64,000 nucleotides of DNA from Chlorokybus atmophyticus (taxonomy: Eukaryota > Plantae > Mesostigma and Chlorokybus algae). The position numbers and the translations under genes were made by a program. The notes beneath the pieces were generated by a model. The model was not told the origin of the DNA. It worked only from the letters and a program-made list of their open reading frames with translations, and did no database searches. Where the stretch lies: contig RHPI01003330.1 in assembly GCA_009103225.1 (NCBI GenBank), positions 426,635-490,634 of the forward strand. The letters run 5' to 3'. Shown here piece by piece: positions 24,498 to 33,050 of this stretch. Position 1 is the stretch's first letter; the number at the start of each line of letters is the position of its first letter.

Positions 24498-25337
24498 ATG
24501 GCTGCCATCAGCTCCGCCGCTGCTGTGATTCCCACCGTCGCCACGTCGGCCTCCGCCAAGCCCGTCACCGCCTTCAACGGCCTCAGGAAGAATGTCGCCT
24601 TCGGCAAGGCGCCTGCCACCTTCTCCCAGAGGACTGTCACCAATGGTGCCACCACCTCCATGATCCAGGTTTGTGTGCCCAGGAGATGAGATGTGACTGC
24701 ATGTGTGTGCGTGTGGTGGTGCCGGGGCGAAGTGGGTAGCTGTATCTGTTGCTGGATGTTGCAGTGCTGTTGGCTTGCATGCCGTGACAGGCGGTCTGTA
24801 GTGGTCCTAGTCGGTGCAGTATGGCTTGAAGATGTATCAGGACGAAGTACTGCTCATGTTGTTGCTGCCTTATGTGCTGCAACTCACAATCCGGATTGCA
24901 ATCAGGTCTGGTCCCCCATCAACAACAAGAAGTTCGAGACGATGTCCTACCTGCCTCCTCTGAGCTCCGACGGCATTGCCAGGCAGATTGACTACCTGCT
25001 GAACCAGGGCTGGATCCCTTGCATCGAGTTCGACCACAGCGGCTTTGTCACCCGCGACTACAACTCTGGCCCCGGCTACTATGACGGCCGCTACTGGACC
25101 ATGTGGAAGCTGCCCCTCTTCGGCTGCAACAACTCCCAGCAGGTCCTGCAGGAGATCGATGAGGCCAAGCGCGCCTACCCCAACGCCTTCATCCGTGTCA
25201 TTGGCTTCGACGCCCAGCGCCAGGTGCAGTGCGCTGGCTTCATTGTCCAGCGCCCTGGACAGCAGTTTGGTGGACAGCAGCAGTTTGGTGGACAGCAGCA
25301 GTTTGGCAACCAGCAGCAGTATGGCTCCTACTACTAA
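24498..25337 (+). CDS. RBCS: Rubisco small subunit precursor, 2 exons (24498-24668, 24906-25337), with Q/G/aromatic C-terminal extension
   Basis: Transit peptide, then MIQ|[60 protein letters not shown] are unmistakable RbcS motifs. Confidence 0.99.
25257..25325 (+). repeat. In-frame 15/18-bp tandem repeat encoding [23 protein letters not shown] at the RbcS C-terminus
   Basis: ggacagcagtttggt / ggacagcagcagtttggt / ggacagcagcagtttggc / aaccagcagcagtatggc read directly. Confidence 0.95.
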
Positions 25338-26484
25338 GTGCCAAGAGGGCTGAAGAGGGCTGCCTACACCTACTCGTTTGCCAACCGAGCCGCATGCAGC
25401 TGTCCAGAGGCAGCTGAGAAAGGGCTCTTGACTTGTTAGAGATACACCCACCCACATACCCACCCACATACCCCGTTGTGCTTGAGGTTATGCCGGGCAC
25501 TGTGATACCTACGAGACAGCTGGCCTAGCTAATTGTTGTGATACTGTGTAGCTGTTACTGCTAGGCATTGGACCTTGGCTGCAACTATGCAGACTTAATG
25601 TGATATAGTCTGATTGTGTCCCACCCATCGTATTGCCTACATGTTCAAGGTGTCTGCCTTCTTTGCAAGCGATGATGCAGATCTGTGCATTGTGACTTAG
25701 CAAGATGTTGTGCAGGGAAGTTCTGGGGCAAACTGCTACGCCAGCTGCAGTTTGCCCCAGAGCACGCTATTGCAGGACGTGCAACGTGCAATAGGCAAAG
25801 ACCGTAACAAGACAACTGGTATGAACTAGGGTAGTGAGCAAGCAACAACGGCAATGTGCATGGCTTGAGGTGCTAGCACAGCTACAAATTCATCATAAGG
25901 CATAGCAAACATGCACAGCTTCCTGAAATTGCCCATAGCTGTCTGTCAAGCAGACAATTGATGTAAATTGTTAGACAGATATCCATCACAATCCGGCAAG
26001 TCACGCGTGCGTGTTGGCTGTTGAACTCGATGTGCGTCACCATGCAGAAAGTGATGTGCACCTGATTGGGAGAAAAACGCAGCAGATACCATAACGATAA
26101 GCACATGCTGCACAAAACCACCACGCACAGCTGACAAGTCTATAAAGCAGGCAGTAACACTGCCACCATGGACAGTTCTCTGCTTGATTGATTTACCCAA
26201 CCATAGCGTCCAAAGTGACCAGCATCTGAACATGCGATCTCAAGGACTCTGTCAGGAGATTCAATCAGGAGCTTGGCTGGGAGGCCATCGCCTCTACCAG
26301 AAGGAAATCCTGTCCACTAGATTTGATAAAGTGTACTCTCTACTATTTATCTTGTACTCAACTACTCTGGTTATGACTATTGATGTTATTGATGTTATTA
26401 TATATGTTATCCCCTCCTTTCTTGAAGTTAATTTCTTCCCCCTCCCCCTTGCCTTGCCTGAACCTGATGCGCGTTGCCCAAAGG

Positions 26485-29400
26485 TTATCGCCTTCCTTCC
26501 ATCTTGTCGTATGCAGCATGTGCCAGCACCTTGGCAATTTCAAAATGGAGCTGCTGACATCGATGCATGCGGTTCTCCTGTTCCAGGCATTACACACACA
26601 CATTGATGTCACACACACACAAGCAAGCGCAGGGGGAGAGAACAATCGCAGGCCAAGGGAATGACGTGACAAACCTGATAGAGAAGCACTGCGCAAAAGG
26701 TGCGAAGCCACAGCGGGTCCGTGCACACGCCACCTGCAGCTGGAGGCGCCACATCGTTGTGTCGGAGCTTTCCCGCGACGCTCGCCATGACTTCATGTAG
26801 ACTCATCCGCGTTCCTTTGCGCTTCTGCAAGGCACGTGCGTCAGTACGCTTGCCGGTACGTAGCATGCAATTGGCGTTACCAACTACTTGTTGTTCGCAC
26901 CTGCAGGCCAAGAAGCATCTGAATGTCCTTCTCTTGTCGTGCAAGCGCGGCCGCCTTCTTCTTGTTGAACAAAGCAATGCGTCTGGCCTCTTGTAGGCGC
27001 TTCTCCTCCGCTTGTGCATCCTCCAGGTTCTGCACACAATCAGAGCACACGTTACAGCCCAGCCTCAAGGAGTTGACTGGTTTTCCTGCTCGAGTACAAC
27101 GTGCGAGTGAGGCTAACATACCTGAATGATTACACCAATGAATAAGTTGGTGAAGATGAAGTGGCCAAAGAAGATGAACAGGATGGGAAAAAGCTTGGCT
27201 CCAGCACCTGGAATGGCATATGATATCGCTTTACAAAACAGACACAACAATAATAACTTGAAGACCCTTTTTCCAAGGCAAGTCTTACCAGCGCCAAGAA
27301 AGAGAAGCTCGTTTACAAAGTCCGTCCAACCATCAACAGTGACAAAGCACATGAGCGACAGCAGCCCACTTGTGATGCTACCCCAATGTTCAGGAACCAA
27401 CGTGCCATAGAAGCTGTAAAGCGAGACGGCAAACACAAACCTGCGCGAAATCATTCGCACACGGTCATGTCAAGCAGTTGAGGCTGTGCAGGAGCATGAC
27501 TATCAAGCACGCAGACAGCTTTGGCTACGAACATGATGAGAAGCAGGAGGCCAACCAAGTGCATCACTTTGGTGACGGTGCGAGTGAAGGCCGTAACAAT
27601 GACCTGCGAGTCACTGTAGCTTTAACGAGTGCGTCAAGAAAAAAGCATGCAGCCTTGAGAGTTGCAACCACTGAACAGCCTCCCACCTGTAATCCGCGCA
27701 CCATCGACACGCTTCGCAATGCCCTCAATGCTCGCAACCCTGCAAGTGTGACAATCAGCACGATGAGCACTGCTGCACATGTCACTTGGTAAGTAGACAG
27801 GAGAGGCTCTTGCCTCGCAATACTCGCAGGAATGTGATCTGAGACTTCACTTGCAGCAGCTGCATAATTTGCTGTATGTACGTGAGAACCAGCAAGAAGA
27901 AATCGAACCGGTTGTAACTGGACGACAGCAACAGCACAGTCAGTGTGCCATAGATCAGTCTCTCACTCGTACATTCTTGAGCCTTGCATAGAGGTCAACT
28001 AGAGTCCAGATTTGAACACAAAGCCTGTACCTGCTTTTCCAGTAGATTCGCGGCTCCGCATACACCTTTAGCAAAAACTCTATGGTGTACAGTGTGATAA
28101 ACAGCTCGTCTGTGGCCTGTCGCACAAGGCAGACACATCAGCTTTCCTGAGGTTCAACACGTACAGGCAACAGGGCATGGGTTGCGCCATCCTACCTGAA
28201 AGAGCTTCGTGTTGTGCCGTGCAAACTCGTCGTATGTCTCCATTGCCAAGATGATCAGGTTTAACAAGATAACCAGCATGACCGCAGTTTGAAAGAAAGA
28301 CGACTGCACACCACCACATAGTTGTTGTTAATAAGTATGGGCTGGGCTGAAACTTCACCTTGATTGTGGACAGAACCTTACCTTCACAACCAGGCTGATA
28401 AACTCATGGCGCCGAGATCGGTACCGCCTGAGCAATGTGCGCGTCACAGTAGCTGCAAGACTTTACTTTAGTTCATGACTCATACGCAAACATTCATAAC
28501 GCGCACGCAGCAGTCGAGTGTGTCAATTGTGGTCCGCCTACAAGATGCGAAATGGGATGAAGGCGCAGGTGCGGGCGGGGGTAACGGTTCCAAGGCAGGT
28601 TTGGGAGGAAGCTCCGGGGCTGCTTTGATTGAATGCTGGTCGTGATACCCAGCTTCACGCTTGGCGTACTTGTCGGTAGTGCCAACTGGGTGTACCTTGC
28701 TGTTGTTGTTGTCAACAGGGTGCACTTTTGCAAGATTGGGACCGAGCAGGGACCTCCGCACCGGCCTGTCATCGCTGCAGGTCGATAACGTGATGTTGTT
28801 AGCCCAAGCAGTACCATTGAAACTTGGACGATCGATTGTGCAACTCGAAGCGCGCTCACGTGCCACTTTCATCTATGCGGCCAAGGCGATGCGGTTGCGG
28901 TTGGGTCTGCTGCTGCTGCTGCTGCTGCTGTGTGGACGAAGATGAGGCCTCACTTGCAGACGCCTTTCGTGCTTGAAGCATCTCCCGGATGCGTCTGCGC
29001 AAGAGGAAGAAAGCCAAACTAATATGCATACTAGAGTATGATAGAGTATGACTCCAGTTGCTGCAACAACTGTCGCATGATTAACAAGTAATGCACAGAG
29101 CACACAGAGCAGCAGGCTTGCGTTCAGTGAATGCGCCATCACATTCCGCGTATGCGTCCGGCTTCAACCTCATTTGTGCCAAACAGCAACAAGGCACACT
29201 CATCAACCTCTCCTGGCTTTGTCACTTACTTGAAGTCGTCACTCTGCTCCATGCGCTTTGTGCCATCCTCATCTTCATGGTTGTGGCGAAAACTTCCCAG
29301 GTTGGCGCTGTCTTCCGACCAACGCTTGCTGCAACAGAACACTTAATGATTACCAAAGCGCATTGTTAACATAGCAAAGCCAACTGTCAAACTCGAGCGC

Positions 29401-29783
29401 TTGTGTAACGACCAAGTACGGTGGCAGCGTTTACTGAACAGCCGTTGAGGGTTTCAATTACGCCTGATGAAGAGTTACCTCCAATATATTCAAGCAGCTC
29501 TGACGATTGTACATGTATACAGATCTAGTAAAATTATAGGTCTCTCCAAATGTACTCCCCTCAACCACACACAACGCACGCAACGCTGAGGATAACAGCT
29601 GGAGGGGCTGTCTGTCTCACGGACAGCACAGATAATGGCTTACTCTCTGGCTCTAGCGACAACAGTGGGTGACAAGCTCCCCCTCCTGGCAGCGTCGCTG
29701 CCACTGGTGCTCGCACCGCCATCAGCCTCCTCTTGGCGCTGCTTTCTGAACAACGATGGCCTGGGAGGCCCCTCAAGCGGCAT
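26485..29783 (-). CDS. CATSPER3: Single-domain 6-TM voltage-gated Ca2+ channel alpha subunit, CatSper3-like
   Basis: Spliced exons: RRYRSRRHEFISLVVK / SSFFQTAVMLVILLNLIILAMET / ATDELFITLYTIEFLLKVYAEPRIYWKS / YNRFDFFLLVLTY / GLRALRALRSVSMVRGLQ (S4) / VIVTAFTRTVTKVMHLVGLLLLIM / FVFAVSLYSFYG..HWGSITSGLLSLMCFVTVDGWTD (filter 27326-27340) / FPILFIFFGHFIFTNLFIGVII (S6) / coiled coil / LRHNDVAP..TDPLWLRTFCAVLLYQ / ENRMHRCQQLHFEIAKVL..RR* (stop 26485-26487). 5' exons (ATG 29783 or 28872) are tentative. Confidence 0.85.
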
Positions 29784-30610
29784 CTCAAATAGCACAAGGA
29801 CAATTTACCCCGGCACGCCCACCAGCCCAGCCATGCCGCCGCCCGCCCCACTGACTAGCATACGCCCAATGATGGTGAACATGCCTGTGAACTTGCTTGT
29901 GACTTGCCTTTTGTCTCACCAAACTGCTGTCTGAGCTATAAACGCCCGGCGAGCGCATTGCATTGCATAGCATTAGTGCGCGCGCGCCTACGTGCGGCAC
30001 GTAACGTGCCCCCTCGCAGCTCAAATCACATAAAGGGCATTGACAATCACACTCATGATTGAGCTGGGTTTGCACCCCAGAAGAACTGGTTGAACTTGAC
30101 AATGTCGTCGCACACCCCGTCATGACTCAGCAAGCACAGCCGTATGCTTGTAGTCGGGCCTTGTAGCTCGCTTTACGACGCCCGGCTATAAGCATACGGC
30201 TTACAGCGAGCCAAGGGTAAAGCCGTATGGTGGTATGCTTGTACGCATGTTGCACGGCGGATACTTTGGTGCCAAGAACCGTGGCACAGCATGTCACGGA
30301 GTGTACCATACCTGTCGAGCCATAACATGATAAACTTGGGGCCTAAAACCTTACCCTTAATTTTCCGCTGCGGACGTTTCGCGAGTGTGTGACGCACACG
30401 CCTCAGCTGGTAGGGTCAGCCCATTCACCGGTCATGTCTGGTGGCCTCAGCTCAGATGTCCGGCTTCCGCGCGACAGGTTGTCCGAGATTCTTCCAACTC
30501 TGTCCGGAATCTCATGCCGCTATTTAACAGCCTTAAGACCAAGCTGCTGGCAGCGGCGGCGGCGGCAGTGACGACGTAAGGTTTAGGGATTGCTGTAGGT
30601 GCTGGCGGCG

Positions 30611-33050
30611 ATGGCGTCGGCGTCGGCGGTGTCGGCTCAGTCCGCATACGGTGTGTCGATTGCCGCACCTGCTGCAGCATGCGCTACCACGGCCCGCACT
30701 GCAAGCCGCTCTGTGAAGCAAGCACCTTTTGCTGCTGGTCAGGGTAAGCAAGCAAGCAGTCAGGAAGGCTCGCCCTGTGATGGTTTTGGAGCTGTTTTTC
30801 ACACTGAGACACCGCTTTGCACGGCAGTACTGGTCAGTTCAGCTGTTAAATGCTGTGTTTCTATGCAGCTTGCGTGCCGCGAAGCTCGTTTGCGGGTGCC
30901 TCGCTCTCAGCTAGCACCTGCAGAAATGCTGGCAGCCGCGCTGTTCAACCCCTGGTCGTCACCGCCGTAGCCACTCCATCAAGTATGTGACAGAACTTGG
31001 CTGGCATTGCACGGAAGCTCTATTAGTGCACCGATTTTGCAAGTTGCTTCGTGTTACAGCTCGGATGGCTTGCAGAACCACGCTAACAGTTCTCACCAAT
31101 TCGCAGCCCAGGTGGATTACGAGCAGATGGCGGCTGAACTTGAGAATGCTTCCCCCCTTCAGATTATGGACCGTGCGCTCAGCATGTTTGGCGATGACAT
31201 CGCCATCGCCTTCAGGCAAGTGCAATGCTTGACACTGTCCTTCCACATGCAGCTTGCTAGCTATGTCCGGACCAACAGCGTGTTATCAGCCGCATGTCAG
31301 GAGTTAGTACTACCACTCTTGATGCCACAGTGTTGTCAACGCCATCTTTGTTTGCAGTGGAGCAGAGGATGTGGTGCTCATCGAGTATGCTCGCATGACT
31401 CGGAAACCGTTCCGTGTTTTTAGCCTGGACACTGGCCGCCTCAACCCTGAGACCTACAGGCTGTTTGATGAGGTGTGTTTTCTGCTCTGTGACCCACTTG
31501 AACCCCTGTACGTGAGATGCATGATGCGGACTTGTTTTGCAAATTGGAACAGGTGGAAAAGAAGTACAACATTCACATTGAGTACTGCTTCCCTGATGCT
31601 GCCGAGACGGAGGCTATGGTTCGTGCGAAGGGTATGTTCTCGTTCTATGAAGATGGCCATCAGGAGTGCTGCGGCATCCGCAAAGTCCGCCCGCTGAGGA
31701 AACAGCTTCGGACGCTGAAGGCTTGGATTACTGGTCAGAGGAAAGATCAAAGCCCTGGCACCAGGGCTGCTGTCCCAGTGGTTCAGGTATGCGCCATGCT
31801 GCATAGTTGCTGTTAAATTACACAGAGTCGGGCTTTGGTTTCCGTGGAAGTGGGCATGTAGGCTGGATGATGTGCCCTAGATGATGACTGGAGGTTGGAT
31901 GCAGGTCGATCCAGCATTTGAGGGTGTTGATGGTGGCAAGGGTAGCCTTATCAAGTTCAACCCGTTGGCCAACGTTTCAAGCATGGACGTGTGGAATTTC
32001 ATCAGGATCATGGAAGTTCCATACAACAAGCTTCATGAACAGGGTTATGTATCTATTGGTTGTGAGCCTTGCACAAAGGCCGTGCTGCCCGGCCAACACG
32101 AGCGGGAAGGCCGCTGGTGGTGGGAGGAAGCCACTCAGAAGGAGTGTGGACTCCACAAGGTGTGGCTGCATTTGCACATGGATGAATTGCATAGCCATGA
32201 ACAACAGCAGTTGCGCTTGAACACCCGCCGTTTGCCATTTGCCCTGTTTGAGTACGTGGCTTCTATTCCTACAATGGCATGTCGTTTGCAAAACACAATG
32301 ACAATGTGGTGCAGGGCAACATTGACAAACCTGATGGCGCAAGCGCAACGGCTAGTGCCGCGTCCTCAGAGGCAGACCTATGGACTGATGGTGCAGTCAA
32401 GGAGATGTCTTACGAGGACGTATCTCAGCTAGTCAATGGAGGAGACAGGAAAGAGAACACAATGGTTGTGTTGTACGCGCCGTGGTGCCAGTTTTGCCAG
32501 GTAGCATCGGCAAATCGGGTTGTTGTAGTTTGTAAAGGTGCACTGCGCGCTTGGCTCCAACCGGCTCGCACTGTTTACAGGCAATGGAGTCAGCGTATGC
32601 TACAGTAGCCAAGACACTCAGCAAGACTGGCCAGGTGGTGCTGTATGTGTTCCAAGGCCTGGCCGTACATTTGTGGTTGGATCTCTCATTTGTGGCATGA
32701 TGCTGGTTGACGGTGTATGTGTTAGTCTTGCTCGCTGACAATTTGCATTTCGTCAGGCAGTTGGCAAGTTTCGGGCAGATGGCGAGGTCAAGGAATGGGC
32801 AATCAAGAACCTTGGTCTAACGACTTTCCCCACGATTGTTATGTTCCCTAAGTCAAGGTAACCAAGCATTCAAGTTTTCTTGCAGTTGAGTGGCTGCGAC
32901 CCTGTGACTGTAGAGCTGACATTCGTGTGCAAGGTTGGGCTGATGATGGTGTTGGGCTCTGCGCGCAGTTCGTCTTATGTTACATACGCAACTGATAGGC
33001 GAGACGAGCAGTCACTGGTAGCGTTTGTCAACGCAGTTGAGAGCCGATGA
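30611..33050 (+). CDS. APR: Plastid adenosine-5'-phosphosulfate reductase (plant type: 4Fe-4S reductase domain plus C-terminal thioredoxin-like domain)
   Basis: AIAFS|[86 protein letters not shown]; N-terminal transit peptide. Confidence 0.97.

Follow-up and report, generated by a model that had tools for sequence, protein, structure and literature searches.

Whether an alga of the green-plant lineage can carry an intact subunit of the flagellar Ca2+ channel CatSper is the question raised by a 64,000-nucleotide stretch of the Chlorokybus atmophyticus genome (GenBank assembly GCA_009103225.1, contig RHPI01003330.1, positions 426,635 to 490,634 of the forward strand; hereafter the window, in whose own numbering all coordinates are given). 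An initial annotation, made from the letters alone, had read a CatSper3-like channel here. We find a CatSper3-like gene on the minus strand (26485-29783) with 15 exons, a coding sequence (CDS) of 1710 nt, and a product of 569 aa, which is likely to be a native, expressed CatSper3 orthologue and part of a Ca2+-permeable channel.

The CDS runs from an ATG at 29783 to a stop at 26485, translates without interruption, and is preceded by an in-frame stop 5' of the ATG. The initial annotation had begun the protein at an ATG at 28872 and counted 12 exons, but this ATG lies out of frame inside exon 3, the first ~33 residues of that translation were read through intron 28775-28859, and three 5' exons (29783-29644, 29328-29230, and 28994-28860) were missed. 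These upstream exons were located by tblastn of a public protein model onto the window. The model, P0001 (EukProt EP00898, JGI Chlat1 5598 / Chrsp369S05407), was the one near-identical match when the stop-free segment 27122-27439 (minus strand), which comprises the pore exon, an in-frame intron, and the S6 exon, was searched against 1.84 billion representative proteins. As a transcript check, Logan contigs of an RNA run labelled Chlorokybus (X1) were aligned to window positions 26300-29900; they are 95-99% identical to the window and therefore come from a different Chlorokybus strain. Thirteen of the 14 exon junctions are seen as joints in these contigs, namely 26577/26675, 26824/26901, 27029/27122, 27207/27289, 27440/27533, 27603/27687, 27739/27814, 27917/28031, 28116/28196, 28303/28382, and 28452/28542, and, at the 5' exons, 28994/29230 and 29328/29644. 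At the fourteenth (28860/28774), a loose contig end lies at 28778 with letters matching 28860 onward, and the same junction is used in P0001; it is not reported as a joint because the contigs break at a CAG repeat. The comparison with RNA that had been proposed for this gene supports an intact 569-aa open reading frame (ORF). Contrary to the earlier claim, the splice sites are not all canonical: intron 27813-27740, within S4, has GC-AG ends and is spliced in the RNA, and the donor after 27533, GTTCGT, belongs to an RNA-supported junction. The joint in S4, read as 27738/27813, may shift by up to three places and fits 27739/27814 with GC..AG ends, and the latter junction alone keeps the Arg-every-third register of S4. 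The exons and the features within them, each with the evidence that places it, are as follows:

29644-29783 (-): exon 1, with the ATG at 29783; tblastn of P0001, RNA joint 29328/29644
29230-29328 (-): exon 2, N-terminal low-complexity region; RNA joints 28994/29230 and 29328/29644
28860-28994 (-): exon 3, polyglutamine (poly-Q) tract; P0001 mapping, translation, loose RNA end
28907-28930 (-): CAG repeat encoding Q8, at which the RNA contigs break
28542-28774 (-): exon 4, Pro/Ser-rich N-terminal region; RNA joint 28452/28542
28382-28452 (-): exon 5, pre-S1 segment (RRHEFISLVVK); RNA joints 28452/28542 and 28303/28382, aligns with the pre-S1 segment of orthologues
28196-28303 (-): exon 6, S1; Pfam Ion_trans positions 2-34 for the exon alone (E = 3e-4), RNA joints
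28031-28116 (-): exon 7, S2 (TIEFLLKVYAEPRIYWKS); RNA joints, orthologue alignment
27814-27917 (-): exon 8, S3 (YNRFDFF) and first half of S4, with the GC donor; RNA joint, S4 register
27687-27739 (-): exon 9, second half of S4 (LRALRALRSVSMVRGLQ); RNA joints, misread in the public model
27533-27603 (-): exon 10, S4-S5 linker plus the first part of S5, with donor GTTCGT; RNA joints 27603/27687 and 27440/27533
27289-27440 (-): exon 11, remainder of S5 together with the pore helix and filter; RNA joints, best PDB match CatSper3
27326-27340 (-): selectivity filter codons T401-V-D-G-W405; aligned with mouse CatSper3 TVDGW and the clade's T[AV]DGW
27122-27207 (-): exon 12, S6 (FGHFIFTNLFIGVIIQ); RNA joints, PDB alignments
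26901-27029 (-): exon 13, charged helix after S6; aligned with mouse CatSper3 residues ~270-310
26675-26824 (-): exon 14, part of the tail, including LRHND (26753-26770); aligned with 'tlrhtd' of mouse CatSper3, clade consensus LRHDD
26485-26577 (-): exon 15, tail helix QQLHFEIAKVLA and stop; aligned with 'qelyceivnvl' of mouse CatSper3, clade consensus QQLHFE

Compared with this structure, P0001 is mis-spliced: exon 28452-28382 is skipped, the GC donor at 27814 is read through, and neither exon 27603-27533 nor exon 27440-27289 is included. Because of the GC-AG intron and the weak donor, the model is left without the second half of S4, S5, and the entire pore, and it matches the Pfam profile Ion_trans (PF00520) at profile positions 2-101 only. 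The missing pore is an annotation error, with no lesion in the gene, and presence/absence surveys of predicted proteomes would therefore miss or misjudge the Chlorokybus channel. Differences between the two strains comprise five synonymous and two non-synonymous changes (K315T and D251E) in the channel core versus two synonymous and three non-synonymous changes in the N-terminal region; in this small sample, the core differences are as expected if the core is under purifying selection.

Some observations on splicing stand apart from the coding model. The pore exon is separated from the S6 exon by an 81-nt intron (27208-27288, minus strand) that is in frame and free of stops. If retained, it would place 27 additional residues, most of them hydrophobic, between the pore loop and S6; it is spliced out in an RNA contig. 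Introns 4 (28453-28541, where 6 extra nt follow 28498) and 1 (29379-29643) are read unspliced in low-depth RNA contigs, which may represent pre-mRNA, retained-intron forms, or DNA carry-over.

The spliced product is a single-repeat channel with six transmembrane segments (6-TM), S1-S6 being covered once in the full alignment, and exon pieces as well as P0001 match PF00520. No second channel repeat is present in the gene or the 64-kb window, nor is there a second channel gene in the window. Residues 1-205 are of low complexity, rich in Ser, Pro, Ala, Arg, and Gln, and include the Q8 tract, and a Pfam search of residues 1-212 returned no domain. A pre-S1 segment leads to S1 (residues 230-249), which is followed by S2 (264-283) with its conserved Glu and by S3 (292-312) containing YNRFDFF. 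S4 (residues 318-343, FLRVLRGLRALRALRSVSMVRGLQ) carries five in-register Arg and a sixth, S5 (356-379) is followed by the pore helix and the filter T401-V-D-G-W405, and S6 comprises residues 423-448 (FGHFIFTNLFIGVIIQNL). The C-terminal tail of ~120 residues is helical and cytoplasmic and bears KLRHND and QQLHFEIAKVLA. The earlier description of a single-repeat 6-TM channel with a TVDGW filter and no internal stop holds for 26485-28774, where all junctions are RNA joints. The filter fits the CatSper3-type signature VT[AV]DGW[TS], although TVDGW is not in itself diagnostic of CatSper3, as had been assumed, since the closest orthologues, those of Mesostigma and Chara, have TADGW.

To which channel family the protein belongs was examined by comparing it in three parts with chains in the PDB, whereas the full-length work used scripted BLAST and profiles. 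Among single-repeat chains, mammalian CatSper3 (mouse Q80W99, 7EEB chain C; human Q86XQ3) matches the pore, S1-S3, and the tail best. With the pore and S6, CatSper3 chains scored best (9ubw_C, E = 3.7e-4; 7eeb_C, E = 7e-4), versus E-values of 0.07 for CatSper4 and 0.1 for NavMs, and the pore exon reached 24 bits with CatSper3, 16.7 with CatSper4, and 16 with BacNav. S6 and the tail together matched mouse CatSper3 by phmmer (7eeb_C, E = 2.2e-11), in an alignment that spans chain residues 245-378, takes in LRHxD, and extends as far as the last helix, while the runner-up, a T-type Cav repeat (E = 3.6e-7), matched S6 only; exon 14 alone gave no match in the PDB, the tail being matched solely when joined to S6. 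For S1-S3, CatSper3 was the best of the single-repeat chains (43.7 bits vs. 36 for CatSper1 and 36.7 for BacNav). Four-repeat channels top the whole-chain table for this part because their repeat scores add up; in the one four-repeat alignment displayed (Cav1.2), the best repeat scored 25.6 bits. In hidden Markov model comparisons, the full protein scored 430 bits with the CatSper3-like clade (streptophytes omitted), 182 bits with the CatSper1-like clade, and 137 bits with BacNav, and the consensus of the CatSper3-like clade (36 members) has the tail motifs LRHDD and QQLHFE, which correspond to those of the window protein. The likeness to CatSper3 beyond the pore that the initial annotation had proposed is thereby upheld and spans pre-S1 to the end of the tail, and the human CatSper3 strings it had cited agree in substance with the aligned PDB chains.

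For CatSper2 and CatSper4, the comparison of the window protein is indirect, via its sister in Chara braunii (support 100/99) and a CatSper4 fragment. The Chara orthologue (GBG74351.1, P0004) gives one continuous match with 7eeb_C over residues 2-354 (143 bits, vs. 90 bits with NaChBac). Its predicted model has a 6-TM fold with a mean predicted local distance difference test score (pLDDT) of 75.7 and a core >90. In Foldseek comparisons with Swiss-Prot models, mouse CatSper3 (8.7e-16) and human CatSper3 (1.6e-15) took the top ranks at 26-27% identity, followed by CatSper2 (3.5e-11), CatSper4 (1.5e-10), and CatSper1 (4.3e-10); among PDB entries, chain C of 7EEB ranked first, and the nearest ESM Atlas clusters are CatSper3.

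Full-length BLAST alignments gave identities of 48% with Mesostigma viride and 45% with Chara braunii over ~350 residues, and of 38-40% with crinoid and coral CatSper3-like proteins, the alignments ending a few residues from the C-terminus. In a maximum-likelihood tree of 75 rows and 377 columns (LG+C20+F+G4, posterior mean site frequencies), Chlorokybus, Mesostigma, and Chara form a clade (100/99) within a CatSper3 clade of 35 rows (98/90) that also includes CatSper3-like proteins from Anneissia and Montipora as well as sequences of the glaucophyte Cyanophora, Physarum and Mastigamoeba (Amoebozoa), Chromosphaera (Ichthyosporea), and Ploeotia (Euglenozoa). A CatSper4-like fragment is the sister of this clade (100/96), CatSper1-like proteins form a clade of their own (96/92), and BacNav is split from every eukaryotic row (100/99), so that the grouping with BacNav named at the outset as an argument against CatSper3 did not appear. 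Inside the CatSper3 clade, the animal rows adjoin the holozoan Chromosphaera (94/97), and vertical descent therefore fits. A quick tree placed a dinoflagellate single-repeat channel with EF-hands outside both CatSper clades. With a profile built from the Chara protein and the CatSper4-like fragment, all hits were CatSper3-like or BacNav proteins, and no land-plant or chlorophyte protein was among the hits of the protein search. Taken together, these sequence comparisons make the window protein very probably a CatSper3 orthologue.

Two further groups emerged from the same searches. The CatSper1-like clade (P0064 and relatives, filter TLDDW) is widespread in protists and also found in sponges; its members include a protein of the labyrinthulomycete Hondaea named 'Sodium channel protein type 11', an 'Rmarinus' entry (taken as Rhodelphis marinus), and Chromosphaera, which carries both CatSper3-like and CatSper1-like proteins. 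Given this wide occurrence in protists, the split between CatSper1 and CatSper3 is far older than animals. Characiform fishes (Acnodon, Serrasalmus, and Metynnis) encode 'hypothetical proteins' (P0020, P0021, P0033, P0037, and P0038) with the filter ITLDSW, which make up a group (100/100) on a long branch within the animal CatSper3-like proteins and occur in more than one copy per genome. Zebrafish has been reported to lack CatSper genes (PMC5406480).

The surroundings of the gene are those of a green-lineage genome, in agreement with the initial annotation. RbcS (24693-25337, plus strand; PF00101, E = 1.7e-37) lies directly downstream on the opposite strand, and the other flank holds an APR-type gene, recognized by its PAPS_reduct (PAPS-reductase) domain at ~31881-32432. 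The 14 introns of the channel gene are short, spliceosomal, and resemble those of its surroundings. On the grounds of these neighbours, the spliced RNA in another strain, and the streptophyte clade, we regard the gene with high confidence as native to Chlorokybus and expressed.

The Chlorokybus protein shares with mammalian CatSper3 the single-repeat 6-TM plan, the TVDGW filter, the S6 motif FIF.N.F.GV.I, and the tail motifs LRH.D and Q.L..EI..VL. The distance is nevertheless large: even the Chara orthologue is only about 26-28% identical to mammalian CatSper3, and Chlorokybus adds the ~205-aa low-complexity, poly-Q N-terminus and a fully charged S4, and its channel would serve zoospores instead of sperm. 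The orthologues of Chara and Mesostigma (Mv20684, P0158/P0014) have the tail signature in common with Chlorokybus, whereas their N- and C-terminal extensions differ, as does the filter (TADGW vs. TVDGW). Flagella are borne by the sperm in Chara, by vegetative cells in Mesostigma, and by zoospores in Chlorokybus. BacNav channels (NavAb, NaChBac, and NavMs) and the engineered CavAb are likewise tetramers of single-repeat 6-TM subunits and have T-x-[DE]-x-W filters, but BacNav channels are homotetramers, lack the CatSper3 tail, form a separate clade, and score far lower in the profile comparison. EukCat channels of diatoms, haptophytes, and dinoflagellates are also single-repeat voltage-gated cation channels of photosynthetic eukaryotes; according to Helliwell et al. 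2019 (PMC6509283), they are phylogenetically distinct from CatSpers, and that study also lists channels resembling CatSper in phytoplankton. A functional analogue within the green lineage is the voltage-gated Ca2+ channel CAV2 of Chlamydomonas (PMC11621555), which switches the flagellar waveform but is a four-repeat polypeptide outside the CatSper family.

In mammals, all four subunits CatSper1-4 form the pore, and each is required. By analogy, four subunits would surround one pore in Chlorokybus, with the ring of filter Asp residues selecting Ca2+, and the tetramer would probably be mixed with orthologues of CatSper1, 2, and 4 and joined by auxiliary subunits, as in animals. S4 would move with voltage, while the conserved tail may contact partner proteins. 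Together with Mesostigma, Chlorokybus makes up the first branch to diverge within the streptophytes; it is a soil alga that lives in subaerial packets of cells and from time to time produces scaly zoospores with two flagella (PMC7027972). As the zoospore is the sole flagellate stage of the alga, the membrane of its two flagella would be the natural site of action, where depolarization, possibly together with alkalinization, may open the channel and the entering Ca2+ may then alter the flagellar waveform. We lean slightly towards such a flagellar Ca2+ role, and the chances that a full heteromeric complex exists in this alga appear close to even, tilting a little to the negative side; both assessments extrapolate from known CatSper channels and their relatives.

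Several points weigh against a CatSper3 orthologue working in a flagellar complex. The tree has no CatSper2 and no mammalian rows, represents CatSper4 only by a 154-aa fragment (P0024), and does not contain the curated EukCatA-C. Neither the CatSper1-like nor the CatSper4-like seeds retrieved a streptophyte-named protein, within the bounds of a word-index search with at most 8000 candidates and of unreliable gene models. CatSper has been described as weakly voltage-dependent (PMC6509283, PMC11621555), whereas the fully charged S4, for which only the algal charges were counted, suggests a stronger voltage dependence. Finally, the transcript was assembled from bulk-culture RNA, and expression need not be zoospore-specific. 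A CatSper3-type subunit acting alone would accommodate much of this: it would form a homotetrameric voltage-gated Ca2+ or cation channel without CatSper1, 2, and 4 or auxiliary subunits, possibly in a non-flagellar role, which would suit the failure to recover a streptophyte partner, the five to six Arg in S4, reminiscent of the self-sufficient sensors of BacNav and Cav channels, and the presence of the transcript in bulk culture. We nevertheless consider this rather unlikely. The partner searches were limited as stated, and the Chlorokybus channel itself is mis-modelled in the public proteome, so that missing partners prove little; in addition, the co-occurrence of CatSper3-like and CatSper1-like proteins in Chromosphaera makes the subunit split old, and the tail common to the window protein and mouse CatSper3 suggests conserved partners.

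The remaining explanations are far less probable than the CatSper3 orthologue. Membership in another single-repeat family, either BacNav-derived or EukCat, with a likeness to CatSper3 produced by convergence of the filter only, could appeal to the BacNav chains as next-best single-repeat PDB matches and to the wide distribution of T-x-[DE]-x-W motifs in such channels. We rejected it as very improbable on the profile scores, the tree split from BacNav, the full-length likeness, and the position of the dinoflagellate EF-hand channel outside the CatSper clades (with curated EukCatA-C outside the tree). The patchy phyletic pattern and the lack of chlorophyte or land-plant proteins among the hits might instead be explained by contamination or recent horizontal acquisition, which was dismissed as the least probable reading of all: the gene sits between RbcS and the APR-type gene in one stretch, has 14 short spliceosomal introns, recurs as the same spliced gene in the RNA of another Chlorokybus strain, and belongs to a monophyletic group of three streptophyte sequences. 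The occasional formation of zoospores in Chlorokybus (PMC7027972) and the pore-less public model could also point to a decaying relic that is transcribed but non-functional. Such a pseudogene is scarcely credible and was likewise rejected, as the correct splice form is an intact ORF with all key sensor, filter, and gate residues, the substitutions in the core between strains are mostly synonymous, and the RNA joints trace the missing pore to an annotation error.

How far a CatSper3 in this lineage was already on record depends on where one looks. The initial annotation held that CatSper was unreported in the green lineage, which stands for the searchable literature but not for the databases, since NCBI and UniProt name Chara GBG74351.1 'Cation channel sperm-associated protein 3'. 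We found no searchable paper joining CatSper with Chara braunii, and those pairing CatSper with charophytes, streptophytes, or Archaeplastida did so only in reference lists or other contexts. The Chlorokybus/Mesostigma genome paper mentions neither channels nor calcium and surveyed flagellar genes with Chlamydomonas queries only. Reviews date the origin of CatSper to Apusozoa and Opisthokonta or to before the unikont/bikont split; one study noted that Arabidopsis lacks CatSper and called for more plant species (PMC5406480), and plants have been treated as CatSper-less (PMC6660944). As far as searched, the streptophyte CatSper3 thus exists as a database name and not as a discussed finding.

The orthologues in Chlorokybus, Mesostigma, Chara, and the glaucophyte Cyanophora show that early Archaeplastida already had CatSper3, and the channel family is therefore older than the divergence of plants and animals. 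Should its absence from land plants be real, as the zero land-plant hits suggest weakly, CatSper3 was lost later in streptophyte evolution. We tentatively raise the broader possibility, which we hold somewhat doubtful, that the green-plant ancestor had a complete CatSper complex (four pore subunits with beta/gamma/epsilon-type and EFCAB9-type subunits) and that Chlorokybus, Mesostigma, and Chara still steer their zoospore or sperm flagella with it. If this is true, CatSper would date back to about the last eukaryotic common ancestor instead of being an invention of the Apusozoa and Opisthokonta lineage, and it would have disappeared from the line leading to land plants and from the studied chlorophytes. 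With these orthologues, the Ca2+ control of plant-lineage flagella becomes testable in culturable organisms, for example in Mesostigma cells and Chara sperm.

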